Below the pieces are notes generated by a model. It had not been told where the DNA came from and did no database searches. It saw only the letters and a program-made list of their open reading frames with translations. 64,000 nucleotides of DNA. It comes from Paragordius varius (taxonomy: Eukaryota > Animalia > Nematomorpha). Every line of letters starts with the position of its first letter. Position 1 is the first letter of the stretch. The stretch spans positions 7,874,001 to 7,938,000 of the forward strand of contig OZ176050.1 of the NCBI GenBank assembly GCA_964247055.1, in the 5' to 3' direction. This document shows, in pieces, positions 8,128 through 52,800 of this stretch. Position numbers and translations under genes: made by a program.

Positions 8128-11100
8128 TTAAACTATTTGTTCAACATCTTTTGATTCATCGTTCTTCAATTGTTTCTCTTGTTCTAAAAGAGGGATTTTC
8201 CATTCTGTGAGATCAACTTCCAAAATTTCGGGACTCGGAGGCGCGCTGAGATAGAGTTTAAGTATGAAGTCATCTAACATGTTAACATCAGAAAAAATAT
8301 ATTATGTTGGTATATATTTTCATATTAGTAAAATTATATTATTCTGTCATAAAAGCATGTTAAAAATTAATAGACGGGAAATTTTTAAAAATGTACCAAA
8401 TCATACCGTCTATATATATATGACTTAATCTCTAAAACCTAAAAATCTGTGTTCCGTATTTTTTTAATAAGTGCCAGAAAATACAGATCCGGCACTAAGT
8501 TTTGATGTCTAATTATTTTGATATAATGATTCATATTCAAAATCTTAGAGAATGTATGCATGCTCTTTTATTTCTGAAAATTTTACATATATTATTATAA
8601 TTCTAAAAAATATTGTTAAGTTTTAAAACTGCGGTTCAGCCCACTTCGTAGCGAAACAGTTCCAACAAAACGTAATAGTTCCGATTCCAATTCATTATAT
8701 ATGTATTTAGGGGAAAAACCTGATTCAGTGTTTGATGGTTTATTCGTTTGAATCGTTTCAAAAAGATAGGCAAAATTTTGACATATAGCTTCCGTATCCA
8801 TCCCAATCTGTGATAAGAGGCATTCAATTTCAGCCAAGTGAGGATATTGCGTTTTGTTAATGTGTGCAGCCAAACTATTATCACACATTACTGTTTGATA
8901 GCTTATCGATTTGAGGTATTTGGTAACGAGTCCTTCAACATCGGTTCCGACATTACCTTTACTAGGATGCGGCATCATACCTTTGCCCAAAATGACACGT
9001 AAATTAGTAACTTCCCCATACATTTCAGGCGTACAAATGACATAATCGAAATCGCTTTTCTTCACGATACCCTTGATGATACGTTTAACCAAATCTTTCC
9101 CACCTATTATTATTATTATTATTATAAAAGATTTTATGAATAATAGGAATGTAAAAGATAATATTAAAATATCTAATCCCTCCTGTAGCAGGTATAATGT
9201 AACCGAATGGAGAATCACTTTTTTAAAAACCTTATATACTATTGATCCTTGAAATCTATATATTTATAAAAATAGAAAATGCTGGCTTTGTGATCTGGTA
9301 CAGGAAAACCGGTAGACCCATTCTAATCCAAACATCGAAAAAATATAAACATTAATGAATGCTCCGACAATAGCTTCGCCCTTTTTTTGAAATAGGCCCC
9401 CAGCTCGGGCCCACCCCGTGTGAAAAACGGGTTTTTTTTGAAAACAGAAGTCCACAAAAATCGTGTCTTTGAGACAATTTTCCGGAGAACGTGTTGGTCC
9501 ATTCTATTTAAATATGATTTTTATTTAGTTATTTTCGATTGCGCCAAACATAGTCGAGTCACTTTTTTAATTTAGGCCCTCTTTTTACCCGCTCCCCCCG
9601 TAAAATGCCATTTTTTTCAAAAAACAAAGTACACAAAAATATTTTTTTAAATCTCTTTTTCGACCAAGACATGAGACCGTAAAAATTCAATATGGATTCC
9701 ACGTATTCCCTGTTAAAAGGCAAAAATTTTAGCCAAGCGTTTATTTGATGATAGCTGCTGGGTAAGGAGCTACCCGCGAAAACTGACTCATGTAACTTTG
9801 TGATCTGTTTCCGGAAAACCGGTGAACCCATTCAAATCCAAATATCGAAAAAATATAATCATTAATGAATGCCCCGACAATAGCTTCGCCTTTTTTGGAA
9901 TTAGGTCCCCAGGTTGGGCCCACCTAGTGTGAAAAATGGGTTAAGTCAATTTTTTGGAGAACGTGTTGGACCATTCAATTTCAAATATGATTTTTGTTTA
10001 CTTATTTTTGGTCGCGCTGAAAACAGTCGATTTTTTGATTTAGGCCCTCTTTTTACCCGCTACCCCCGTAAAATGCCATTTTTTTCAAAAAAAAACAAAG
10101 TCCACAAAAATAATTTTTTAAATCTATTTTTCCCCCAAGTAAACAATAAATTAGTATGAATGCACCGTTTTAAGATTTCTATGAGATCATAGCTATTAAA
10201 TAATGTTTCGAAATAATCCACATATGTAGATCATTTTATTGTCCCTTTTTTCAAATAACCCCCCCCAGAAGTCCGAAGGACTTCCTCGGGCTGCGTAGCA
10301 GCACGAAATTTACGCTAGTATTAAATATAAATTTATTTTCTATTTTAAAGGTTAAATTATCAAGATAAAAAAAATTATATTTCGATAAAATGTTTATTTT
10401 TTTTTCTTTTACAAATAAATATATATTAATATATCTAAAATATTGCAAAAAAATATATTACACTAGACAACAAATTTTGACTTTTAAGTGCCATTCTTGT
10501 AAATTTTAAATTAATTCATGAAAGTATATATATAGTATATCTGAAAAAAATGGTCTAACATCTGAAATTTTTTTATTATTATATTAAAAACCGTGCTTTA
10601 ACCTTATCAGTAAACTCTACAACTTTCAAAATGAATTTAAACTATATCAAATCTTTATAATCCCTGACCTCGATTCCCGCATCAGAGCCAAACGGCTTAG
10701 ATGGGCAGGTCACATTCACCGACGCTCACCTGATAATTACCTACAAAAAATGCAATCTTTCCGCACTATAAGGTCGAGACCGGGACTGCCTTTGAAACCT
10801 GGTCTTCCACAATCTCCGATAATCTAGCCTTGCTGGACATAAAACTTGAAGATGTGGAATGTAGAACCTCTTGGAAACCCAAAATCAAATCCTACATTAA
10901 CTCAGCCACCTTCAATAAAGAAAGGCGTTGACGGATTAGGGTCTATCGAATATTTTTGGCCCAGGTTTAATATTAAAGTCAAATTTTCAAAATTAAAAGT
11001 TTTAGATATAGAGCCATGTATTTTTTTATCATTTGAAAGCCAAAAAACTGAATCGAACGGTGATTAGTCATTTAAATCCATCTGATTTAAAAGTTATTTG

Positions 11101-14100
11101 GCTTTATATGGTCAAAATTTTCAACCCTTAAAAAAATCAAATATTTTCACAGACGAACTAATTTAAAAATCATATATATTTTAATAAAATTAAAATTTAA
11201 TAAAAATCTTTGAAAAAGCCTTTGGTTTGCTTTTTTAATAAAAATTATTATTATCATAATTATTACCTAGTGGTATTAAAATGCATAGTATGACTGTAAA
11301 TTTATATAATGGTTATAAACGATGAAGAATACATCAAACTATATTTCTAGTCTTTAAAATCAAATTATAAGCTTTCTACAGGTAATAATTAATATTGATA
11401 TGATGGTAATTTTCTTAAAAAACAAAAAATCAAAATAGCTGTTTTGAATGACATAAAAACAATAAATAAGTGATTTCAAAAAAACTTTCATGTGTTAACT
11501 TTGACATTCATTGCCATCTACACAAAGTTTGGGTTATTTTCGTCCATTAGTTTAAAAAATTTGTTAATTAAGAAAAAGGCTCTCGCTTCGCGCGTTTGTG
11601 GCTTCCGTCCGATAATAACTATCGATGTGAAACATATCACTATGCACTTTATAGAGTTTTAATTACTCTTTCAAATGATATATTGCAAATAGGAATTCGT
11701 AATATATTTTCAAAGAAAAATATTTTTTAATAAAATTTTAATAAAGAAGGCGCATAATCATAAATAAATCAAATTACACTATTATTAGGTGGTATTATAT
11801 TTTTTATATTAACTTTACTGTTGAAATGAGATAGTTAATTTCAAAAACGCAAAAACTCGAGTGGCAGAAAAATTTATCTAGAGTTAAATTTTTTCTTGTG
11901 ATCTAACCTCCCATAAATTGGTGAAAGATACTAATTTATATATTTAGTCATAACAATTTATGTTATAGAGAAAACTTAAGGTTGATACAAATATTTGTCT
12001 TTTAGTTTTTACGTTTTGTCTTTATTTTAATTTTTGTTGTATGTATAAAAATACCTGCAATGACAGCCCCGGCATCACAGGCAGCCTCTTGTTCAGGCGC
12101 TTTAGCAGCAAACACCAATATTTTATTGTTGAGTTTTAGGGGAAAGGTAAAATGATTCGGATAATGTAATATACCATTGAAAGATGCAATGGGTTTGGAC
12201 TGAATATGAAATATTTATAAGACATGTGATAAGGTAAAAAACTTTTGACATACCCATTATTTAAAAATGTTCAAATCAATATTAACTTGTAACTGTTTTA
12301 AACTTTTAAAACCATTGTATATGTGGACTTAATTTATACACCATTTCAAATTCGAGCAAAAGAATTGAAATTATGATAATTTATTTTAATAAATGCTGGA
12401 AAAATCTATACTTCATTTCGAATTTACTACAAAATTACAATCAGTTATTATACGATGAAAACATATTGCCTATATTTATCTAGATGGGTATAAAAAGATT
12501 AAACATATAAAAAGAAAAGTGAAGATATAAAACGTCAAAAAAATTAAATTTAGAAAGCAAACGTGGGCCAAAAACAAATTTATCAATGAATGCTAAATTA
12601 GTTTTTTTCAGAGACCAGAGTTTCTATTTCATAAAAATCAAAAATTAATTATATTATTAACAAATAGATTACGTCTACGGACCTATTTAAACGAAAGGTG
12701 CAATCACTGCATCTACAACCATTATATAAATAATGGTTATATGAAGGAAAGCACCTTTTATCATTTTTATAAGAGAGAATTGATTCGAGGTATACGGAAT
12801 GCATAAACCAAAAATGGCGAAAACTATCCCATAAAAATACCACAGTAAAATACTACACTTAACAATAACACCAACCCCTAATGATTCTTTTAGCCAAATA
12901 TAAGCTGAATACATTAATAATTAATTTAATACACAAACTCTTTTATAAAATTCATATATATTAACAATAATCCGTGATTTTTTTCGAAAAAATAAAATTA
13001 AATTTTAATTGTCAATAATACAAAATATAGAACATACTTTTTTACTGGATGCCATGTTAATCAACATTTTAGCGTAAAAAAGACCATCCAAATTATCATA
13101 TATTTCGGGACTTGCCACTTCTTTATGCATTTCAATAGCTTCCCGTAAATTATAGATTTTTGGTGGAAATTTTTCCATCAAATAAACATCATCCATAGGG
13201 ACACGTTTCAGAAAATCTTGATATTCTTTGGATTCATAATTTACATTCGTGTGTATTATTCTAATATCACAAGAATATATATATCAGTAAAATACGCCAA
13301 AAAATATTATTTGGTTAAAACAAAATGTTCAACGTCAAAGTAAAAAATTAAGTTTTAAGACATATCAATCTTATTATGTAGGAATAAATAACGAGTTACC
13401 TTATTTGAATTATATATACAAAACTTAAGTATAAATAACATAGATTAATTAGAACAGGATGATATATATTTTTGCTTAAAATATAATGATAATACAGGTT
13501 TTAAAATTTAAGATAATGAATATAAAATGTATAAATAAGTAATTAAAGGTAATATGCAAAAATAATTTATAAAAATCCATGTCCTTAACCAAGCGTGTCG
13601 AACTCGCGGCCTAATGAAATATTAAGTAGACTGCGAGATTTAAATACAAAATAAAATTTAACGAAGATTTTCTAAAATAAATTTTCTGAATGATCCTTCT
13701 GAATTTTGGCAATGAGAAAAGTGATAAAATAAATAGTAGATTTTAAAGTCTTATGTTAAAAATCTTATAAAATATTTGTTGATGCCCATACATTTTGAGA
13801 TGGCGGCCGGCCGGATTTTCTAATAAAAATGCGGCCGCGAAACAATTTGTCTTGGACAACTCTGTTCATTTTTACAAATAAATTAGGCGTTTACTAATAA
13901 GAGTTTCTTTTTATAAATCCCGACAGTTATTAATCCTATATACGCTATAAATCATTTTTGCCTAGCTGCCATAAATGTAGAGAAAATAACTAAAATACAA
14001 CTATTATGGTCATTATTGAAAAAGAGGCCAGTTAAAATGGATATTTTATAATATATTCAATTATGCATACTTCTTCTTGGGAACAAATTCTTTTTCAACC

Positions 14101-14254
14101 TTAACAGGTTCTTCCTTTTTTCGTTTTTTCCCTTGCCTTCCTGGAAGTGTACGACCTCGATAACCTCTACGTGCATACCTGTTAAATTAATAATTTAAGA
14201 AAATAATTACCTTTTAATAATAAGATTATAGGATGAAAAGCATGCGTTCCACAT
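8128..14254 (-). CDS. MRPL1: Mitochondrial ribosomal protein L1 (uL1m)
   Basis: Phase-consistent GT-AG exons 14254-14211, 14178-~14070, 13260-13038, 12199-12055, 9103-8720, 8273-8128. Basic N-terminal presequence, 'VPMDDVYL...IYNLREAIEMHK', 'FDYVICTPEM', 'LGKGMMPHPSKGNVGTDV' and C-terminal 'FILKLYLSAPPSPE' are typical of metazoan MRPL1. Confidence 0.9.
9255..10318 (+). mobile_element. Non-autonomous Helitron with internal ~510-bp tandem duplication (MRPL1 intron)
   Basis: 5' end TC(TATATATTTATAAAA) after A9254. 3' end has the hairpin GAAGTCC-GAA-GGACTTC followed by CTAG at 10315-10318, then T10319. No TSD. Block 'ttgtgatctg...ggaaaaccgg' repeats at ~9288 and ~9798. Confidence 0.75.
10657..10870 (+). 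mobile_element. 5'-truncated RTE-like LINE fragment (ORF2 C-terminus)
   Basis: Translates IPDLDSRIRAKRLRWAGHIHRRSPD...RSRPGLPLK, then after a frameshift TWSSTISDNL. Matches the 'RLRWAGH...GRP..RW.D' tail of RTE-clade ORF2. Confidence 0.75.
10935..11885 (+). repeat. ~950-bp interspersed repeat, copy 1
   Basis: Collinear, diverged reverse complement of 36815-37790 (for example 'ctctcgcttcgcgcgtttg' and 'aaaactcgagtggcagaaaaattt'). Confidence 0.8.
13590..13864. mobile_element. Degenerate hAT (Charlie-like) MITE
   Basis: Ends caagcgtgtcgaac / ttggacaactctg. 3' part 'aaaaatgcggccgcgaaacaatttgtcttggacaac' resembles 50910-50951. TSD not preserved. Confidence 0.55.
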
Positions 14255-15705: not shown

Positions 15706-21616
<5,911 letters not shown>

Positions 21617-22129
21617 AACGTCATTGAATCCACACATACTGCTCAATTTTTAGTTCTCTATTTCAATTTATTTGCGATACAATTTGACGGAAAAAACAAT
21701 GTTAATAAATATACCTTTAAATATGCCTAGTTTGATAGAGTAAAAAAATTTGATTTACACGTAAAGCTGTCAATAAAGATCTATTAATTAAATTTGCTGA
21801 AAGTTTCTTATGTACTCAAAATAGCGCAGCAATGTATTTTATATATTATTTGGGTGGTAAATTGCGAATAATGACAATATCAGGTATTAAGATTCATATT
21901 TTACAGTATGGACATTTATGCTGGCTTATTCACATTATTGTTGGCCACTCTACAACACAGTAAGATATGGGTAAAAACAACAAAATGGTGAAATTAAAAA
22001 TTTTTTTCCTTTTATTTATTTATATATGGAGCAAATTTGTTTTATAATACACGCTACTTTATACGAAATGGCCAAAAATAATGTGAAAATACCAGCATAA
22101 ATTTGCATACTGTAAACTATAAATCATAT

Positions 22130-22620
22130 TTTTTGTATTATAAATATGGTTAACACTCCATTATTTGGGGTAATTTTATATTCCAGAGCGAGTTGAAATT
22201 CGAATATTTTAAAAAGTGTATAAGGTATTAAGCCGAAAAATATGCTTGCTTTAGCTTTCGCATAATGCAAAAAAATTAAAAAAAATGTAAAATTGTAAAA
22301 AATCATCATCTCAAATTTTTATGCCGCTATATTTTTATTATAAATTTTTTTAAATCGCTATTGTAACAGGCAAATAATTGTATATTATGGTTAGAAAATT
22401 TAAAAAGCTTCTAGGCTACATTTTACCAGAAATATCTTGTTATATTTTGATTTTAATATCAGCTGTTCGTTTCAATCGTGTTATAGAGCTGTCCTAACTT
22501 TAGAAGTCACAATGTAAAAAATATTTTATCTAATACATGAGAACAGTGTTTAATAATTAAATTTTAACTAAAGCTATCAAAACTGTAGTTTATTTACATA
22601 ATTGAGCTCTGGGATATATA
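22130..22620 (-). repeat. Repeat family B, inverted copy
   Basis: Starts TTAACACTCCATTATTTGGGGTAA. Contains reverse complements of the 'aaatggcg..aaaaagtttgagatgag' and 'gacagctc..aacacgattgaa' motifs. Confidence 0.65.
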
Positions 22621-23645
22621 TCCACCTATAAATAAACGAGGAAAAAAATGATAAAATTGAATCACCAGACTATTTTAATTGATATTATTAAACTAATGAA
22701 AGAGACGGTCCAATTTGAATTTATGCTTTTATTCTATAATCATTTAATAAAAATTTAGTTTTAAATACCTCGCAATTTTTATTTTAAAACACTTTTGAAA
22801 AATATCGTTTCTTTAACGTTTTTTAAAATTTATAACATTGATTTCAATTTTGACTTTCAAGCTTATCCATAAACAATATATATCAATTTTTTTTAATCTT
22901 TTTTTATTTCCGAACAATGTTGTACAGTGCAAATTTTTGCCATGGTTTTAATATAATCCACATTATTTAAATCGAAGGCCTGAAATGAATGTGTTGTATC
23001 CAAGTGTTTAAAATCGTAAATAGGTTTTAGCCAAAAAGCATAAAGTGCGTAATTATTTTTCGCTAGAAATGCTATTTTTTTAGGCTTTATAAGCTAAACT
23101 GACTATCATTCTTTGAAAATTAATATATATCGGCGAATGTAGAACACGATCATTGAGAAGGTCACTATATTAAAAAGTAAAAATCTTTTACCAAACTTAC
23201 TTACCCAAGTGGGATTATAGTCCAACACTGATATCTATCTTATAGAAAAAATCTTAGAACTTTATTTAAATTTTATATAAAAATACTCTATAAATCTTAA
23301 AAATAGTAACGTTTATTTTATATTTGTTATGAATTTTCTTAATTAATATTCATTAATTTGATTGCGACGGTCAGAAGATTTCTGGGGTATTTTGAATTTT
23401 ATTTTAAAGTTTTGAGTTAGAATTTTTATAATGTCCAATAAAATATTTAAACTTAAACTAACCTTAATAGTGTTTTGGGGGTTTAATTAGAGAAATTATA
23501 TATGTCAATTAAAATAAGTTGAAATTTACTTATATAATAATTCGTAATTTGGTATGTAAAATATCAGTACACTGGTCAAAAAATTCTATAAAACAATTTT
23601 AAATTGCAAATAATAGGAATATACATTAAAACAATAGGGTAGATC

Positions 23646-24056
23646 CTATGAGTTTTCAGACTCTTGGAATCTATATATAAGGTTTTATTTAACTTGCACT
23701 TTGGGCATGTATAAAAAACAGTTTGTCCTTCGTCTATTGATCTTAATTGTTGCGTAGTGTAGGCCATTTTATCATTATTACATTTAATGCAAGTTCTATC
23801 AACCTAATATAAATTACATGAGATATACCAATGGACCTATTGAAACATCTTTGTTTTTAATAGGTTTTTTAATGGAGGAAGTATTGAAAACAATTTCATA
23901 GCGATTTTCAACATGATTTTCTAATATTAAATTTCACAAACCTTTTAATTGATATTTATATGGACAGTTCCAACATTTAATAATATTAGTGTTAATTGGC
24001 AATGGTAAAATAGACTCACAATGCGGGCAAAAATTTTTTGAATCGTCGGACTCCAT
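23646..24056 (-). CDS. POLR1H: RNA polymerase I subunit RPA12 (113 aa)
   Basis: Exons 24056-23942, 23920-23829, 23803-23694, 23670-23646 sum to 342 nt. Two zinc ribbons (CPHC..CWNC; CIKC..CPKC), TFIIS-like 'QLRSIDEGQTVFYTC' and terminal 'FQESENS'. Introns of 21, 25 and 23 nt. Confidence 0.95.
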
Positions 24057-24174
24057 AAAAAGACCCAGATGTGAAATTTGCGCAAATTTATGCAGAGCAA
24101 ATTTTTAATTCTGGCATCAACTTATTGTTCAATTAACTAAAATTTACTTCCAATTTCCATGTTTTCTCTAACAC

Positions 24175-24730
24175 TTTGATTTAATTTGGGGAATCTAATC
24201 AACCTAGACTAAATTAAAGTAAATTTTAAATCTACTGAAGGAAACGTTCCTAATTTAAATTTATGCTTCTATCCCAATAAAAATTATATAAATAACCTAA
24301 AATATCTTAATAAATTATTTTGAAAAAAATGCCAAACTACTTGGACGCCATTTATTTTGTAAAAAAATTTCAAAATATCGTGTTCATTTATTTTTTAAGG
24401 TATAATTGAAGCTTATTTTTTATTTAAATCTAACATTAAAACAAGTTAAAAAAAGTTGTTTTTTGTATTATTTTTTAATTTAGCCAATGACACATGTCGC
24501 GTTGACTAAATTTTTACCTTTGGGTTTTACCTTAAAATAAGTAATATCAAGTTTTTTGAAAAATGTTTTTTTATATATTCCGGTTTATTAATGTTTTATA
24601 AATGCAAAATTTTGCCATGGTTTCCATTCCTCCAATAATTTTTAGAGTATTTAATTTTAAACAGCCCTAGGGTATTTAACTACCCCAATTTGAATCGAAG
24701 GACTAAAATGAATGTGTTGTATCCAAAAAT
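24175..24730 (+). mobile_element. piggyBac-like MITE family A copy
   Basis: Collinear with 60655-61245 and, inverted, with 43060-43555. Subterminal inverted 'ttggggta/tacccca' motif. Confidence 0.7.
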
Positions 24731-27845: not shown

Positions 27846-30800
27846 ATGAATCAACAACTTATGGCGTATTTTATGACTTTTTGGTTTTTTGGAGGACTGA
27901 TATATCCCCACCGTTTTGTAATGAGTTGCAACAATTTTTTATGCTCCAATAATCGGTGTATCGATAAAAAATTTGTTTGTGATGGAATTGATTCATGTGG
28001 CGACAATTCTGACGAAATGTCTTGTTATGGTAAAGTACTAATGTTTTTATTTTTAAATAATGTATAGAAAAAATAATTTTTCACTATATGCTTAAATAAT
28101 AGTAATTCGTAGTAGAAAGTTTTTCAAGTATGTAAGTCCAGAATATTTGTAGTTTTTATTTTAATGGTAATGGTTAATAATTTGAAATATAATTGGCCCA
28201 TTTATTTTTAATGACAAACCTTTAATAACTGAAAAAAACATTTTTTGAATTTATTATGATTCAAACATTCATTATAATAAAAGCATTTATAAAGGATTTC
28301 TACTTCAAATATTTTACCACTCTGGCATCTTTTAACTCTTTTTCAAGAGCCCAATTTCAATCTACAGAAAACGAATTAAACATTTATATTTTATAGTTTG
28401 TAATCAAACGATTGCAGTCACACAAGAATGGCAGGTGTTACAGAGCCCGTTTATGAAGCTAGGAAAATCGATTACATGCAGCTATACATTGAGAATAGAT
28501 TATACATCTTTACACGCTAACAAAATTAATGATCAACTAATTATTGATACTGATAATGATGATAATCAAAACAAAATTCACAAAGCGTTAGAAGAAAAAC
28601 CAATAAAATCTAATTCCCAAATGTATAATATAACAGTCATGTGGCTACCACAAAAGGAACTCATAAAAGCTATGTATGGACAAAGATATAAAATAAAATT
28701 AGTTGTGAAAGAGTTTGATTTTGGTGTTTATAAAGCAGAAAATGATTGTAATCAAGCATATCTCCAAATTATAGATGGCCCGTTGTATGCCCTCAACGTT
28801 AAAAAAATCAAAATAAATTATAAGAAGCGTTTCAAGATGGTGAATAATTTAATTAAATCGTTTAGGGTTAGGGTATTTAACAAAACTTTAACACCCAATC
28901 AAACTACACTATCAACTCTAATCAATGATTGTAAGATCGCCCTTCAAACTTTACCGACGTTATCAAACCCATATAATACTACATCACAAAAAGACCACCT
29001 GTTAAAGATGAGTTCATGTGATGAGCTTTCACACAATAAAGAAATTGAAACTTATTATTATTTAATAACGAAATATAAAGCACTTATACGATCAGCCGAA
29101 AAAAGTGCCTTATTAGATGCGACGAGTAAACCAAACACAAATGATGTTGGTCGTTTATGTGGTCAAATAAAATCAATGCACATATTTTCAGATGATAATG
29201 ATGTGGACGTGGACTATATGTCCAATTACAATGCAATGCCAAAAGATAAAAATTATGCTAAAAATATCATTTTTATATCCCAGGGATCATGGGTAAAACT
29301 CAATCTGGTAACACAGAATTATTATGCGCACCATCGATATTTTAGGATCCATTATAAAATTATGGACATATTTAAATTTTTGAATAATAATAAAAATAAC
29401 ACTACTCCAAAACATTATAGAGAGCTGCCAACAAAACATACAAAATTATTATTGGATTTTTTAGAAAAACTACCTCTACCAAATAAATATTCGCATATCG
29501 TTTTACGAAATTCTTTATTTAACCCATATAATGAATTTTCCATCCACGGGACGTATTGCGACAAAATTCTGATAAATTGCGAATGGCCTTATTGTAAATT
29601 AAATTCTCCAGGGTATCCCGGTACCATTCTACCTTCAATCAAATGTAATTGGTTAATAATTAACACGGATGGACATAGTCAAGTAAATTAAAATCACCCC
29701 TTTTTATTGAATACATTTTTTCTAATATCCAAGTACTTTTATTATAGAATCAAAATTGAAAATACTCCCGTTTCAACAAATATTTGATTTTTTCATTGAA
29801 TGGCTAAAAACAGAAAATTTTCACGATGTGAAATGATTAAACTTTTGTCGTTATAAAAATTCTATTATTATTAAAATAGATAAAGATTAGACAACACGGA
29901 AAGCAATTCAATCTTGGTAGCCGTATGTGTGAGGATGGTTTGGAATGTTTAAAAAAACATTACGTTCAAGATCGTGATACTGATGATACCTGTACAGAAA
30001 CTATCAATTTCTATGATTCTTATCAAGCTGATGATTCCAAGCTTATAGGATCATTTTGCGGGTATGGTGGCCAATCTTATCAACACAGAATGGTGTACAA
30101 CAAAAAAACGTTTTGGCGAAAATTCCCTAAAATTAAATCTAGCAGTAATATGCTGTACATTGAATACGTTAATGATAAAACAGCTTCGGCTCTTACATCA
30201 AATCGCTTTACCTTTATAATTTCGAGCAAAAAATATGATGATCTAAATCCTCCAAAACTTAGTATAAATCAAATCACGTATGGAAATAAATTTAACAAAA
30301 AATTAGCATATATAAAGCCAAGTTGTAATTTTACCATTAAAAGTTATTGGGGAAATAGTGTTTACCCTCGTAATCGCACTTTCCAAATTATTTACGGTAT
30401 AAAAATGGATAATATAACATTTGACAAAAATGTGATTCCATTTCCTAGACTAAGCCAAGAATCTACAAACTTAAACACAAAATTTTTTGACAATAAAGAG
30501 GGATACATTTCAAACCTTGAGCATTGGTATCCAGCAAACACCACATGTTACATAAAATTTAATGGTTTGGCCCACGAAAGGATTTGGATCTACTTTTCAA
30601 AATTTTCATATGCCTCAGATTTCAATTTAAGTCGGCCCATACAAGATTTATCAGGAAATGCTAATCCTTCCGATGTCAGGCTTACAATTTATGATTCAGA
30701 TTCCGTTATAAATGAAAAAATTATATCGGTATATGACAGATTAAATAGACCGAAAATGTGTGCACGTGAAACGAAATTAGTCAATCAAAAATTATATTTA

Positions 30801-32438
30801 CAATCGATGCCAGCTTGTAAAATATTTACTCATGGCTTATTCTCGTCAGGACCAAATATATTAATAACTTTCACATCTGTTACTAATACATATTACAGCA
30901 GTCCATTGCAATATAAAATCCATTACAAATTTTTGGATGGTAAACCCCAAGGTACACCCGTGCTTAATACCTTATGCGATGAAATAATGGATGAAACTGA
31001 GGGCAAAACAATCGGTACCATTGATTTCAATTATAAGCGCCTCCCATTATTGATGTATAAAAAGATGGCTGAAATTAAGCAAAACAAAAATAACTACATG
31101 TTCAATCAACGCAACGATAATGCTGCTATCGATAATGATTATATCCGTATCCAATGTAATTTCATTATACCAGAATCCAAAAGAGGCGATAAAAAATTGA
31201 TTATCCGTTTCGATGAGTTAACTATAAAAAATGCTCCAGCATATCTTCATGACTGCACTGATTGCTGTATTGATGGAATGTGTCCTCTAACCCTTACCCC
31301 TAATCCCTATATGAATTATATAAGGGTAACAGAAACATGGAATCAAGGTGTAAAAAGGCAAAATAAGACAGTAACATGTTTCTGTGACTCTGAACCACTG
31401 GAAAAGCCATTTATATATGTAACACAACGGGCATCATCCCTTAACATTGAACTAAATTTAATGATTATTTTGAATGAAAAACAAAACACGAATGATTACT
31501 CAAATTTACAATCTTTTACACTGAAATACAAATATGTATCCTTCAATTGTAGTCAATTGAGACAGCTTTCAAAACATAATATGATGCTTTCAACCATATC
31601 CAAGCGCCATTATCCGTTTAATTGTGCTTATGATGTACAAGCGCCTCCGTATTTTTGGTTAAAATTAAACGTTACCCCAGCCCTACAAATATTATCAACT
31701 TCACAATCATATTGTCCACATAATCTATTAATTATATCTACAGTGGCTCCAGAAAATTTGATAGAAGAAGGTTATACTAATCATTCAAAATCAATGGTTC
31801 GCTACACACCATATATACCTGAAAAACATGTAATCCTAAGTGCTTTATGCTATATCCCTTCATTTAGGAACGAAACAATTTCATCAAAATCGTTTGAAGT
31901 GTTCTCCTATGGTTTTACATCTTTGCATTATGCACATCCGCAATCACATTATATGAGTCTTACGTATGTTTCTCACGGCACTCTGACATCCACTCTCAAC
32001 ATAAGCGTTTCGCTTTTAACTCTACTCCGAATACTGGATGATAAACAGCAAATTAGTGAACACATCTCATCACCGGCAATGATTCCATTGTCACGCCGGT
32101 GGAGAAAATCGGTCAAGTGCGACTTTACATGTCCAGACAATCTTACGTGCATAGACAAGGGTCAAATGTGCAATCAGATTGTAGATTGTCCAATGAGTAG
32201 CACCATGTGGTTTAAGAATTACAGTAATTACAAATCTTTGAGCAATATATTAACGCATAATGTGGATTGGTGGAATTTGTACAAACAAGCACACAACGAT
32301 GAGTCCCCGCTAACATGTGATTGGCGGCACAAAAATAGTCGTATGCTTATACTTGCAACCTGTCTTACGCTTGGTGCAATCATATTTCTCCTTATTTTGT
32401 ACGTTCTCATTAAACGTAGCAATAAAATAATTGAATAA
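27846..32438 (+). CDS. LDLa + multiple CUB domain type I transmembrane protein (~1340 aa)
   Basis: Exons 27846-28029, 28397-29682, 29880-32438, phase-consistent. Hydrophobic N-terminus, LDLa ([27 protein letters not shown]), CUB motifs (YLQIIDG..GRLCG; LNSPGYPG; IGSFCG), second LDLa-like repeat, TM segment [21 protein letters not shown], short tail. Confidence 0.88.
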
Positions 32439-35400: not shown

Positions 35401-38400
35401 TGAAAAAATGTCTTTATTATTTTCACTTTGTCTATTATGAGAGAAGATTTTTCAGTTAACAGGTTTTTTATACTATAAGTAGCGTTCATTACCATTACAC
35501 TGCACTGTTTTGGATCCCCTATAAATTACACAAAAATATAATAATTACAGAAATATTTAAGCTTTTCAAAAATTAGATATAAATAAAAAATTAATTAATT
35601 TCAAAACAACTAGCTAAAATTTATTATCATCGTGGAAAAGGTGTATATTAAATTTGGCCCTGCATCTGATGTTATTAAAAGGTAAGTTTAAATTATATAA
35701 ATACCTATCTTATGTTCAGTTAATAATTTTAACAAATTTTCCATCTTTTTCAAATTTCCAATGCTAATTTCTGTGGAAGACTGAGTAATTAATGTATCCA
35801 CATAGTTGATTAATATAGACTTATACATACTAATACTTCTATGATAGTATTGCACAAATCTCAATATACAATTTTGAGCAAATGTTGGATTTTGTATAGA
35901 GGCGTATTCACTAGATGCCATTTGTAACCATAGGTTGAAAATAGTATGATCGTGGTTATTTTTATCAGTAATTTTATTAGCATAGGCTAATATATATCTC
36001 AAATGGTTAGAATTCAGTTGAGTATAATAAATTTCATCATTAAGCATTTTAGACAGCTTTTCAGTGATATTTGTGATAAATGGTGTCAGCATTTCATAAT
36101 TTTGCCATTGATTCAAAAAAATTGAAATGTATCTAAGGAGATTGATAAAATCATCAATATTAACTATATTAGTATTTTTATTTATATCATCAATCATTTT
36201 TTCAATTAGTTTAATGGTAGATTGTTGTAGCGAAATATGACTAGTCGATAAAAATGATTCAACGGTTGCCCGAATTTGCTGAAGTGTAATATCAGGAATA
36301 GTTTTTTGAAAGAAAAGTCCGAAAATTAAAATACAATGAATTTTTTCATACATTTCCATATCCATTATTTTGATGTAATTGTTTTTATCGTTGTTATCGT
36401 CGCCAAGATTTAGACAAAAAAGAGCGTAGGAACATAAGTTTGAATTGGTACATATTGATTTCCAATCATTTTCTTGCATAATTTTACAAAAATATGAATG
36501 TATTTCAGAACTGAGTAAAAGATATTCAAAAATAGTTTTTGACAAATTATTATTGGTAATTGCCTGTTTGATGCAAATTATCATGATGGAAATTACATGG
36601 TCTATGTTAGATGTGATCGTTACACCCTGTTAAAACACAATACATAAAATATGTATGAAATACAATACGGTAGACATTCCATCTTTTTAATAACCCAATT
36701 AGGGCAAAAAGACATGGGATATCCGCATCAAGACACCTTGAGAAATTATTTATTGATTTTTAAAATTAAACAATTAATAAGTGTTTTTTTCATGAGTATA
36801 TAATACTTTGTATTACACTAGACAACAAATTTTTCTGCCACTCGAGTTTTTTGCATATTTTGATATTTAATATCATTTTAACAGTAAATCTGAAATAAAA
36901 ATTATAACTCGTTGGAAGAATTTTGTATAATTTGATTTTTTTGATTATGCGCCCTCTTTATCAAAATTTGACTTTTCTTTGAAAATATACAAGTAATGCC
37001 CATTTGTAATATATCATTCGAAAGAGTATTAAAAACTCTATAAAATACTAATATGTATTACATCGATCGACAGTTAATATTGGACACAAAGAGCGACAAA
37101 CGCGCGAAGCGAGAGCATTTTTTTTAATTATTATATTTTTAAAACTAATGGATGAAAATAGCTCAAACTTTGTTAAGATGGAGATGAATGTCCAAAAAAG
37201 ATAACACAAGAAAGTTTTTTTTGATTAAAACATTTTTTATTGCTTTTATGTCACTCAAAACAGCCATTTTTAAGTTTTTTGTTTTTTAAAAATTATCATC
37301 TCATCAATTAATTTATTTTCTTTACAAGGCTGATAATTTCGAAAATTTAAAGATAAAAACAAAGTTTAAGGTATATTTGATCTTTTATGGCCATTATGTA
37401 ATAAATTTACAGTTATAACTATGCATTTTAGTATCGTAGGTAAAATATTTATGATAATAATAATTCTTATCAAAAAAGCAAACCAAAAGCTTTTCCAAAC
37501 AATTTTTTAAATTAAATACTAATATAACCCTAATAATTATATTAAAATAATTTATATGATTTTCAAATTAGTTTGTCTGTGAAAATTCTTTACTTATTTA
37601 AGGATTGAAAATTTTGACCATTTAAATCCCATTAACTTTCACATCCGATGGATTTAAATAACTTACTACCATTTAAAAATGCAGTTTTTTGCGCTCTTTT
37701 GAATGATATAAAATACATGGCTTCATATCTAAAACTTTAAATTTTCGATATTTCGAGTTTAATGTTAAATCGGGGCCAAAAATTATCGATATACTCTAAT
37801 ATAAAAAAATTCTTCCATGTAGGACCAATTTTCTTTTCAGATATACTTATTATGTACTTTAATGAAATAAATTTTAAATTTACAAGAATGGCAGTTAAAA
37901 AAGTTAAAATTTGTTGTCTAGTGTTATCTAATGAATATATTTAAGATATAAAATTATTTTTAAATTTTATTTTTTTCAAAATAGTTAGCTCATTAAAAAG
38001 AAAGTCATTACAGGAGAATCCAATATCAACAAATTAAAGGAAATTAAGTATATTTTACCTGTAAAGATTGATTAAAAAAGGTCAACATTTTGTATAATAG
38101 GGCATAGCACAGATATCCATCAACACTCTCCATATGTTCTTCCAATGTTGTGGAAAGCGCTGGTATATATGGTATCCAATCTTTGACATTTCCAACATCA
38201 AGCATAATTATTGAGTAGATATGATTAATAAACTCCTTATGATTTGTAATTTTGTTTATAGGTGTAGGATTAGACTTTATATCACAGCACAAGGTTTGCG
38301 TTTCATTTGTATTGCAAGAAAGTTTATCGCAAACACCTGTGAGTTTATTTTTATAATCGAGCGATGATATGAAGGATAAAATGGGCACTAAAAACACATT

Positions 38401-41400: not shown

Positions 41401-42640
41401 GTATTTTTATATATTTAAATTTTTTATCAAAACCTTAGTTTAATAAAGTATTTGTTTTGACTCTACATATATCCCTGTATTTAACATCAACTAACCCCAA
41501 CTTGAAATTTTTAATTGTAAAACATAAGAATATCCAATGACAAATAATTATTAATACTTATATTACCTATTTTTATCATGCTCTCATATAAATACTAATT
41601 AAAACTTTGATTGACATAATTATATAAGTTACTTTAAAAGGATAACTAGTGTATTCAATTTATATTTGAAAATATAATATATAGCAAAAATAGGAAGTTC
41701 AAACATTTTGAGCTTTTCAATCAAAAATATTTATAAAAATATATGAATTGGATAATTGATACCAGAGTTGGATTCCCTTCATAAGAATATATGTAAATGG
41801 ATGTATTTAAATTTTTTTCTTGCCAAAACAACAAAGTGCCCAAATGTAAAAGTGTTTTAAGGTCCATTAAACGAATAATATTATGTTTAAGTGGTTCAGG
41901 ACAGTTTTGTATGTCGTGAAATTTCGAAAAAAGATCGATGTGCAGACTTTTAAGCAACATTGAAATATGAGAAAATGAGTCAAAAAATAAACTAGGAAAA
42001 AATGTTTGAATAAATTCTAAAATAAAAATTATATTTGAACCAATTTTTCCGGTCACCAATTGTATTAGTGTCATATCATTGTGGTTATAGAAAGCTAACA
42101 AAAATTTTAAGAGATTATCTCGCAGTTGTTGATTTTTCTAAAAGGTTAAAATAGGTTTAACTTTAGTGAAATCCGAATAAATTATGTTCCCAAAGTTTTC
42201 CCCTTCAAAATCCCACGAGTAAAATGCTTCAAGTGACAAATATTTATTTTGAACGGAAATTATTACCCAAAATTCTATTATGGTATTAATATATTCCAAA
42301 GAATGTTGAGATTCCATCTTTAATAAATTATTTGCAATATAAGTCGAAAAATTGACATTTTTGATTAAAAGTTTTGAAACAGCTAATGCATAATCCAAAC
42401 TTTGGGATTTTATCATCAGAACAGATAAAGCTCTAATACAATCCGTAAGCTATAATAATCATAAAATAAACTTTTTCTTTTTGGTTTTCTTTGGTTAATT
42501 TAATAACCAATTCATAAAACTGATAAGGATTTGCAGTTTTCTTAAGCGCAATTACATTTGCATCTATATCTTCATATTTGGCAATTTCTAACATTTAACT
42601 AAACAATACTAAAAATAGGCAAGAAGGCGTCTGCTTCCAT
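32476..42640 (-). CDS. URB1: Nucleolar pre-ribosomal-associated protein 1 (URB1/Npa1)
   Basis: ATG at 42640, many exons. C-terminal domain motifs WGPKA..SSLW, YDPRYILPLL, ISALASYDTDCR, FLKLLQNSI, LNVLQNP and LRCIRDGIRDK match metazoan URB1. Several internal exon boundaries are unresolved. Confidence 0.85.
36815..37790 (-). repeat. ~950-bp interspersed repeat, copy 2 (URB1 intron)
   Basis: Reverse complement of 10935-11885. Its terminus 'tacactagacaacaaatttt' also occurs near 10460. Confidence 0.8.
39315..39540. mobile_element. Tc1/mariner-like palindromic MITE, copy 2
   Basis: TA-CAGTCA...TGACGG-TA ends, near-perfect ~95-bp inverted arms, homologous to 17056-17269. Confidence 0.85.
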
Positions 42641-49866: not shown

Positions 49867-52800
49867 TTATTGCAAAATTTCTTGAGCCAACCATTTTGGA
49901 ATAGTTAAATGATTCTTTTGCAATAAATTGTACAAAAGTTGGTTTTTGTGTCTAAAGATTAGGTGGAAATAATATACTTGTATATTTGTTGTAAATATAT
50001 TCGGGTAGAATTATTCATTGATGGGTAGGGTGTCCCTTTGCTAATCCCTAAACAATGCAATCTTCCTTTGGAATAAGGGCAATAAAAGCGTTTTGTAGGT
50101 GAGTATCTGAAATATTATAAATAATTAATAATTTCTGGATCACAAATCCAAAAAATCATACTAGAATTAAGAAAAATATTATTCCCAAATAATATTCGAT
50201 CGGCGCATAAAAAAATGAGCTAGTATGGCTTTTTTCGTTTTTCTTAAAAAATGTAGATAAGTTTGTATATCCAATACTTTGCGCCACGGAAATATATAAA
50301 TTGGATGTCTTTAATGTATTTAACTTCAAAACATTTAGAAATTCGGTTTAATATTTTTATAATGAATATATATGTATATATATTTTTCACCTGATATATT
50401 TGGTGAAATCAAAAAACTTGGATAATTGGAGTGATTTCTGCAAATTGTTCATCAGGTTTATCGGATTGTGTATTAGGTCAAATTCATCTATTGCAATTAT
50501 CTGAAAACATAGATATTTATATAAACTAAAAAAAATATTTGTAAAATTAAACCCAACTTTAATTTGAGAGATGAAATTGATATTTTAAAAAACCAATTCA
50601 TTTTGAGCAAACAAATATTTTATACAAATAATAATTGGCAACAGAATATGTCACTTAAACCAGGGGTGTTAACCCGCGCTCGGCGGGCCGCATGCAGTCT
50701 TCCGAAACGCTTTGTGAGGTTGCAAAAATATGCTGACAAAATCAGAGTAAAATTAATTATTCTTAAACAATTTTTCCAAATAAGTCTATACAATTGGCAA
50801 CGTAAAGATAAAATTGTAATAATATGTTTGCATTTTACAGTCTTAGGTTAAAATCTAATTTATGAATGTCCATATATTTTACAAAGTCTGCCCGTCGTAC
50901 TTTCTAAGTTAAAAATGCGGCCCATAAAGCCATTTGTGTTGGACACCCCTGGCATAAACACATTGTATATTCAAAATCAAATTGTAAATAAAATCAAAAT
51001 TAATTTTATAACTCTTAAAAAGTTATTTCTTGTTTGTTTTACGGATATGCAATATTTTATTTATATAACAAAAAGGTTACAAATAATTTTATTAGAAATA
51101 AACCTGTGAAGCCGGATAATATCTTAGCCATTTAACCAAATGATCATAATAAAAGCCATCATTTATACACCTTTGTTTTAATCCAAGAATCTCCTTAGCC
51201 ATTTTTCTATCCTCACCAAAATATTGTGAACCACTTTCATTTATCATGCTATCCTCAAACGTAACTATGTGGTCAAAACTGAATGTTAAGGCAGCTTTGT
51301 TCCCATGTTTTTTCATGTGCTGTACATTATATATTGTTATTTATAAATAAAATGCACATTAGTAAGACTCAAACTACATGACTTTTGAAACAATATTTAA
51401 AAACAAGTTGTCTATTAAATTATTAACTTTTAATATAAATTTCACGAAATATTACAAAAAATAGATATAAATACTAAATTTTTATGATGCAAATTCCTTG
51501 GTGTTAATATGGAAAAATAATTAACCAATTTTTTTGAAATTTATAAAAAATGCAAAGCCAAACTTGACACTTTTTGCCAATACACTTATTAATTAACTAA
51601 AAATCTATTAAAAATAATTTTTAAACAATTAAATGTTTAGCATTTAAAATTATTTTTTTATTAATAAATCCATAAGTGTGGTTTTGTTAAAAAATACTTG
51701 CTTTATAATAAAACTATACCACTAGAGCAAATAAAGTTTATGAAATGCTTGATAATATTTGTAAAAATAAGTGTTGAGTTTTAATGAAAAAAAAAGGATT
51801 TTTTTTATTAGAAGGATATTTTTTAAATGAAAAAAGTGCATTTCATATGTATAGATCAATAAAAGCGATTAAAAATCATTTTAATATTCTTGTTATGCTA
51901 AAAATATATAGATTTGTTTGCATGAAACGTTTTTAATAAGCAATTATTATGGAAATAAAAACCTGATACCATGAGTAAGCACGGTCAACAGGGTTTTTAA
52001 GTATCACCACAATTTTCGCCATGGGAAGAAGGGAAAAGGCCCGCAAAGCAACACGTCTCTCAAGATTTGCAAAATAATTGGCAGATTTATCGACAAATGC
52101 TATATCACTAGCTTTTGTGTCCCAGAAAGGAAATTTGTTTTCCAATCGAAACAAATTTAAATACCTATAATGTGAAATTTATTTTATCAAAATTGCGTAA
52201 GTAGAGAATTATGCCGAATAAAATAGTGTATATAATTTAATAATTTTTATATCGTCTTCAGGGTTCATAAATATATTGGGAATTTTCTTCGGTAAGAATT
52301 TAAACTTATACAATATTTTTATAATTTTAGTATAATGTGTATCGAAAATCATTGTTAAAAATTACAAATATAGATAAACATTAGTTTTAAGGTGATAAAA
52401 ATTAAGTATTTTTCGATTTTATAAATATAATAAGTTAAAAACCATTCTAGTCCATAATTTTCATAGGCATTACTTGAGAAAAACTGCGTTTCCTCAAAAT
52501 TTTTTGTTAGTTGGCTCGTTCTTATTAAGGGGTGAATTTGGAGAAAATTGAGCAAAGCTGTTGTCCCTAAATTATAAATGAGTTATGTAAAAAACCTAAT
52601 AAAACTTTTATATCATACTGTTTATAGTAAACAAATGTTGTATGAAACATTTTTACATCAATAAATTTCTTTTCCTATTTAATCTGAAAAATTTCCTAAA
52701 TACGTTCGATAACATAGATACTTACGTTTTTTTACTTTGTTAAATTCATAACAAGTATTTTTAAGATTCTTTGTATTTTTAATACCCTTTATAATTATAA

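Follow-up and report, generated by a model that had tools for sequence, protein, structure and literature searches.

Probable 21- to 29-nt spliceosomal introns at ancestral positions in an RPA12 gene and its neighbours in a repeat-rich hairworm genome

Can an animal gene be spliced at introns of little more than 20 nt when its neighbours, and even single genes among them, also carry introns of hundreds to thousands of nucleotides? The question is raised by a 64,000-nt stretch of the Paragordius varius genome (hereinafter the window: the whole stretch of DNA that was analyzed), an AT-rich and repeat-rich sequence with a GC content of 27.2%, in which an earlier note had picked out ten tiny GT-AG segments in five genes. 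Read on the strand of the gene, all ten are indeed bounded by GT and AG, at the positions and with the lengths given below. From sequence comparison, we consider it probable (roughly 0.85) that the three segments in the RPA12 gene, together with at least a 26-nt segment in an NDST-like gene and a 29-nt segment in a protease gene, are genuine U2-type GT-AG spliceosomal introns that lie at ancestral metazoan positions and have shrunk to about 21–32 nt. These five well-supported micro-introns measure 21, 25, 23, 26, and 29 nt; all are at most 30 nt long and thus fall within the length limit used for the introns of dicyemids and myxobolids.

The RPA12 gene, which encodes a small subunit of RNA polymerase I, occupies positions 23646-24056 on the minus strand, and its frame, which starts at the ATG at 24056-24054, is interrupted three times. 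Removal of three segments, each with GT at its 5′ end and TAG at its 3′ end, leaves a 342-nt coding sequence for a 113-aa protein with a TAG stop at 23648-23646, so that three micro-introns are packed within 411 bp:

23942-24056, minus strand: exon 1, with the start ATG (24056-24054) and the N-terminal CxxC...CxxC zinc ribbon, ending in phase 1
23921-23941, minus strand: intron 1, 21 nt, GT..TAG, phase 1, with an in-frame stop inside
23829-23920, minus strand: exon 2, the linker, with GPL as its last residues
23804-23828, minus strand: intron 2, 25 nt, GT..TAG, phase 0, at the GPL/VDRTC boundary
23694-23803, minus strand: exon 3, the TFIIS-type zinc ribbon with RSIDEG (PF01096, 1.2e-13)
23671-23693, minus strand: intron 3, 23 nt, GT..TAG, phase 2, immediately 3′ of CPKCK
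23646-23670, minus strand: exon 4, seven codons (FQESENS) and the TAG stop

Read without splicing, the frame runs into a stop inside the first segment, the second and third segments act as frameshifts, and stops occur in or after each of the three. Only by removing these 21 nt can a GT..AG pair keep the frame open at junction 1; junctions 2 and 3 offer alternative GT..AG solutions, at the cost of conserved residues, including the fourth zinc ligand. The identification of the gene as RPA12 (POLR1H) by the earlier note is borne out by the CPHC..CWNC motifs of exon 1 and by the TFIIS-type ribbon with the acidic loop RSIDEG of exon 3. Exon 3 alone recovers the Pfam family Zn_ribbon_TFIIS (PF01096) over profile positions 2–34 of 39, and the match ends exactly at intron 3. 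The zinc ligands of the predicted protein are all intact, as are the RSIDEG loop and the C-terminal motif.

A word-based search with RPA12 recovered only two distant proteins, and such a search was the source of P0001, a 115-aa RPA12 from marine metagenome contigs, with which the spliced 113-aa product aligns globally from end to end; a further protein, P0011, could also be aligned globally. Across junction 2, the GPL/VDRTC sequence is identical in P0001, and at junction 3 CPKCK/FQESENS-stop aligns opposite CPKCKYKENENS-stop of P0001, with CPKCK/..E.ENS-stop conserved across the junction. A HMMER scan with exon 3 retrieved 711 proteins at E ≤ 0.001. Among the 150 of these 711 matches that were listed there was no close relative, and C.KC.[FY][KQ]E.ENS-stop forms the C-terminus of many full-length proteins among them; since this ending recurs in homologues, the seven-codon last exon is real. 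The protein collections yielded no transcript-derived RPA12 of this organism.

The intron positions themselves could be compared in two unrelated genomic contigs, one from Logan (L006, 40% GC) and one a Tara scaffold (L007), both of which hold RPA12 ORF fragments that read into introns. In the Logan contig, the first intron (70 nt, phase 1) follows the second CxxC by seven residues, the second (78 nt, phase 0) immediately precedes VDRRC, and the third (162 nt, phase 2) comes right after CPKCG; the last exon, at eight codons, is as small as the one here. The introns of the Tara scaffold agree with these in position and phase throughout: the first two are of about 86 and about 85 nt, and the third is truncated where the contig ends. 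Exon 2 of this scaffold ends in ..GGA CCT TTG/gt, compared with ..GGT CCA TTG/gt in the window. Position and phase are thus shared with both contigs for 3/3 introns of this gene, which places the RPA12 micro-introns at ancestral sites and is the strongest argument for shrunken spliceosomal introns. On this comparison, we take the three to be ancestral introns that shrank, and not insertions or errors.

The earlier note had named assembly artefacts as one way in which its proposal could fail. We compared the region 18450-24400 with contigs from four sequencing runs: X3, which comes from another study and bears another organism label, X4, and X6 and X7, both guessed to be RNA. The X3 contig spans 23660-23869 and the X4 contig 23519-23878, with three and 10 differences, respectively, and no gaps in either; both contain RPA12 introns 2 and 3 in unspliced form and behave as DNA. 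Because both run gapless through these two introns, introns 2 and 3 are not assembly artefacts. Relative to X4, the RPA12 region differs by 2.8%, as against about 7–13% with 3–22 gaps per contig in the flanking non-coding DNA. The gapless block of low divergence is therefore conserved in both sequence and length, micro-introns included. The runs guessed to be RNA gave one 37-nt low-complexity match in 18450-24400 and nothing else. X4 shares its species label with the run that best represents this DNA and yet is about 7–13% divergent from the window, with many indels, in non-coding DNA, which points to a haplotype, population, or cryptic species that is very divergent. On either side of RPA12 lie very high-copy repeats (21833-23026 and 24221-24400), with many loose ends and joints and a summed contig depth in X4 of 1e5–1e6, as against about 300–600 elsewhere.

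These data bear on two readings in which the segments are not spliced. If the segments were kept in the transcript, RPA12 and the other genes would be decaying pseudogenes with small insertions, a reading to which a probable 1-nt frameshift in the protease gene at 21025 and the lone low-complexity match in the runs guessed to be RNA could be credited. We judge it highly improbable: it needs three independent insertions, each of the form GT..AG and each exactly at an ancestral position and phase, and base composition alone would supply the four end bases with a probability of about 0.0024 per segment; nor does decay agree with the intact zinc ligands, RSIDEG loop, and C-terminal motif of RPA12 or with its 2.8% divergence from X4 next to the far higher figure for the flanking non-coding DNA. 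The segments might instead be excised from DNA, in the manner of ciliate IESs or of programmed DNA elimination, and not from RNA. Their sizes resemble those of the shortest ciliate IESs, and the contigs seen are from bulk DNA only; however, their ends are GT..AG and not TA..TA, their positions match those of spliceosomal introns of other animals, and they are kept in DNA contigs of three runs or samples, with no DNA contig that skips them among those listed. We regard excision from DNA as extremely improbable.

The other seven segments differ in what speaks for them:

20174-20202, plus strand: 29-nt segment in the trypsin-like protease gene, between exons that match the Trypsin profile at 49–81 and then, across the junction, at 84–131
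49952-49977, minus strand: 26-nt segment in the NDST-like gene, the last intron seen in its sulfotransferase part
42450-42471, minus strand: 22-nt GT..AG segment in a large HEAT-like gene, connecting two abutting open frames
42138-42161, minus strand: 24-nt GT..AG segment in the same gene, with an in-frame TAG at its end
42588-42609, minus strand: 22-nt GT..AG segment in the same gene, for which an internal ATG at 42594 is an alternative start
15803-15827, plus strand: 25-nt GT..AG segment at the 5′ end of the protease gene, where translation from an alternative ATG at 15797 would require no intron
14179-14210, minus strand: 32-nt GT..AG segment at the 5′ end of MRPL1

The claim that frames are restored only by removing such segments holds on homology for the RPA12 trio, the 26-nt NDST segment, and the 29-nt protease segment. 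In the protease, whose catalytic triad (H, D, S) is present, the profile match resumes across the junction, and a 20-nt alternative (20174-20193) would also preserve the frame. In the NDST-like gene, the exon upstream of the 26-nt segment aligns with the sulfotransferase domain of NDST1 (chain 1NST, 325 residues) and stops precisely at residue 295, and reading through the segment meets a stop after five codons. The downstream exon of 27 aa, too short for a significant PDB match on its own, encodes what we take to resemble the NDST1 C-terminus. For two segments of the large HEAT-like gene, the claim rests on the reading frame: 42138-42161 has to be removed and offers a single open-frame solution, and 42450-42471 joins two frames, which makes both plausible introns. 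For the remaining three, the claim is not compelling, as they are dispensable or untestable: 42588-42609 and 15803-15827 can be bypassed by their alternative starts, although splicing of the latter would add a signal-peptide-like first exon to the protease, and 14179-14210 would supply an ATG to a basic N-terminal frame of MRPL1 that reads as an unconserved presequence and leaves the intron unproven. The name URB1, which the earlier note gave to the HEAT-like gene (about 33.6–42.6 kb), found no confirmation: this gene has no Pfam match even at E ≤ 5 and no PDB match, and an atlas search with it returned generic HEAT-repeat look-alikes only.

How readily can such segments arise by chance? At each claimed junction, there are one to four open-frame GT..AG solutions, and in an ab initio test on this AT-rich DNA, GT..AG pairs of 15–80 nt that join open frames showed no excess at any length over decoy dinucleotides. 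Since decoys join frames equally often, only homology and conserved intron positions count as evidence. A further candidate, a 22-nt GT..AG segment of the protease gene (21004-21025, plus strand), was rejected on such grounds, as it probably consists of seven in-frame trypsin codons (VLNELLL) plus one extra base. At this site, 13 positions of the Trypsin profile (132–144) are missing; reading through supplies 13 residues, followed by PVIDHQIC, and fits a core strand of the trypsin family, whereas splicing supplies six. From this fit, an extra base that is an assembly indel or a real frameshift is more likely than an intron; if the frameshift is real, splicing may rescue it. Together, this look-alike and the decoy test mean that repair of a frame by a GT..AG pair alone is not evidence. 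We give about an even chance to the view that some of the ten segments are artefacts of the method (assembly indels, chance GT..AG pairs, or introns made unneeded by an alternative start), in favor of which stand the decoys, the look-alike at 21004-21025, the alternative ATGs for 42588-42609 and 15803-15827, and the choice of solutions per junction. The RPA12 trio, the NDST intron, and the 29-nt protease intron fall outside this view, and for them we retain the reading as shrunken spliceosomal introns.

The signals carried by the segments are very weak. In all ten, the initial GT is followed by A or T at intron positions 3–4, eight of the ten end in TAG, and seven contain a yTnAy-like motif with its A 6–8 nt from the 3′ end, a count that hints at a branch site without being significant: a related motif count (TWAY within positions 12–19 from the 5′ end) was reached in 419 of 5,000 shuffles. 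No distinct pyrimidine tract is present in the ten beyond their general T-richness. In 10.3 kb of long exons, GTWW..TAG strings of 20–29 nt number 13 on the sense strand and 32 on the antisense strand, and codon shuffles give 19 ± 4; the deficit hints at a depletion of cryptic sites without reaching significance. Given these 13 cryptic strings in verified exons, length and these signals cannot define micro-introns alone.

The same genes also carry far longer introns, which set the micro-introns in context:

9104-12054, minus strand: MRPL1 long intron, 2,951 nt, GT..AG, phase 1, repeat-filled
19766-20057, plus strand: ordinary protease intron, 292 nt
20353-20986, plus strand: ordinary protease intron, 634 nt
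21131-21451, plus strand: ordinary protease intron, 321 nt

The first of these was described by the earlier note as the largest intron filled with transposable elements. The exons on its two sides (..AVIAG, ending at 12055, and GKDLVKRI.., starting at 9103) continue the L1 fold, the Pfam Ribosomal_L1 match begins at its acceptor, and bacterial L1 can be aligned with the last exon from residue ~96 onward; by this homology, we regard it as a real intron. The upstream piece, too short on its own, had no significant PDB match, and a word search with an MRPL1 exon found no homologue. About 1.7 kb of the intron consists of repeats that have other copies in the window. One dispersed repeat of about 0.9–1.1 kb is found both in this intron (10935-11875, 941 nt) and between exons of the HEAT-like gene (36827-37930), and 12% of the window has a further copy within it. 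That very short and long introns share genes is likewise upheld: MRPL1 has the 32-nt segment and the 2,951-nt intron, and in the protease the 29-nt intron lies beside those of 292, 634, and 321 nt. A DDX19-like gene has introns of about 140–350 nt, and across this gene, the protease, MRPL1, and the NDST-like gene, introns are mostly of about 90–650 nt, plus the one of 2,951 nt. The window's intron sample, which is not genome-wide, comprises about ten micro-introns and a few dozen longer, roughly placed ones. Within it, introns below 30 nt are a minority and not the dominant class, and no intron of 33 to about 90 nt was seen (a small sample with many approximate boundaries). On this sample, the strongly bimodal system proposed by the earlier note is a hypothesis. 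Elsewhere in the window, a gene for a large membrane protein (27846-32438, plus strand) combines an LDLa module and a CUB-like region with an 837-aa exon, at the end of which stand an LDLa-like motif and a TM helix; a word search with this 837-aa ORF found no homologue. An exact-match look-up of one ORF of the window found nothing, and a scan of the whole window against Rfam at the gathering threshold recovered no RNA family.

Our inferences on splicing itself, on the branch point, and on recognition are as follows. The micro-introns are most likely recognized as whole introns (intron definition), and the minimal signals for this would be a 5′ GT with A/T after it, a 3′ TAG (8/10), and probably a branch adenosine in the yTnAy-like motif 6–8 nt before the 3′ end. 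Other introns of the same genes would have stayed ordinary (about 90–650 nt) or been inflated to kilobases by repeat insertion. Canonical U2-type splicing by intron definition would be the most economical account. The modified spliceosome that the earlier note had considered would not be needed, because myxobolids splice equally short introns with canonical U2 snRNA and U2AF (PMC13644364).

Comparison with known systems shows which part of this picture is unusual. A 26-nt intron is also familiar from transcripts of the XBP1/HAC1 type, a single regulated case in which IRE1 cleaves at stem-loop sites that bound the intron in place of GT..AG ends. The length is similar, but the segments here are GT-AG, lie at ancestral spliceosomal positions, and occur in several unrelated genes. 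In Paramecium and in the nucleomorphs of chlorarachniophytes, the canonical spliceosome handles micro-introns within the range of 15–30 nt. Stentor, as cited in PMC13644364, has introns of 15–16 nt and a canonical spliceosome. Unlike the hairworm, such ciliate and nucleomorph systems are non-animal, have nearly all introns short, and are not known to have a kilobase class in the same genes.

Among animals, myxobolid myxozoans and Dicyema japonicum were the only ones in a survey of 51 genomes to show introns below 30 nt, which the survey tied to compact parasite genomes (PMC13644364, September 2026). The lineages that the earlier note had listed for introns of 20–30 nt included dicyemids and lacked the myxobolids. 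In the latter (Henneguya salminicola, Thelohanellus kitauei, and Myxobolus spp.), the median intron is 22–27 nt, genomes are of about 20–200 Mb with relatively few TEs, and introns below 30 nt are spliced with conserved canonical U2 snRNA and U2AF, for which intron definition has been argued (PMC13644364). The hairworm introns resemble these in being GT-AG introns of 20–30 nt at conserved positions between conserved exons, with longer introns also present, and in their reduced signals, roughly ‘GTa’ and an ‘AG’ that has A residues upstream. They differ in that, in contrast to the compact myxobolid genomes, micro-introns are a minority in the window and their neighbors are repeat-filled and reach 3 kb. 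For H. salminicola, the assembly consists of 93 contigs (N50 2.2 Mb) and lacks a mitochondrial genome (PMC13644364), whereas the sequence here continues for over 5.7 Mb past the window and has an intact MRPL1. D. japonicum, with 36.7% GC, a mean intron of 38 bp genome-wide, and a 67.5-Mb assembly with a scaffold N50 of 1 Mb and 49% repeats (PMC6736024, PMC13644364), is likewise an animal with introns below 30 nt, reduced splice motifs, and a repeat-rich genome; here, unlike in Dicyema, GC is 27.2% and micro-introns, ordinary introns, and kilobase introns are mixed. Ultra-short GT-AG introns are thus already known, and what is unusual is that they occur where the genome is rich in repeats and where the very same genes have long introns.

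Our literature search found no report on intron length in Nematomorpha. For another hairworm, Gordionus montsenyensis, a GC content of 26.93%, which matches that of the window, and a BUSCO completeness of 71.6% are recorded. Tentatively, and with the odds against it, one may see in the present case a third independent animal origin of introns below 30 nt, in a large TE-rich genome, with shrinkage decoupled from genome compaction and the low BUSCO values of hairworms being partly an annotation artefact. RPA12, with three micro-introns in its 411 bp, is a convenient test gene. The aligner STAR, for example, by default counts gaps shorter than 21 nt as deletions. If the reading is true, aligners and gene finders that impose a minimum intron length would break such genes and inflate apparent gene loss, and part of the low BUSCO of hairworm assemblies and of their ‘missing universal genes’ would be a product of annotation. 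Extreme intron shortening would then not need whole-genome compaction, and the hairworm would offer a natural system for studying how one spliceosome handles both extremes of intron length with almost no sequence signal.
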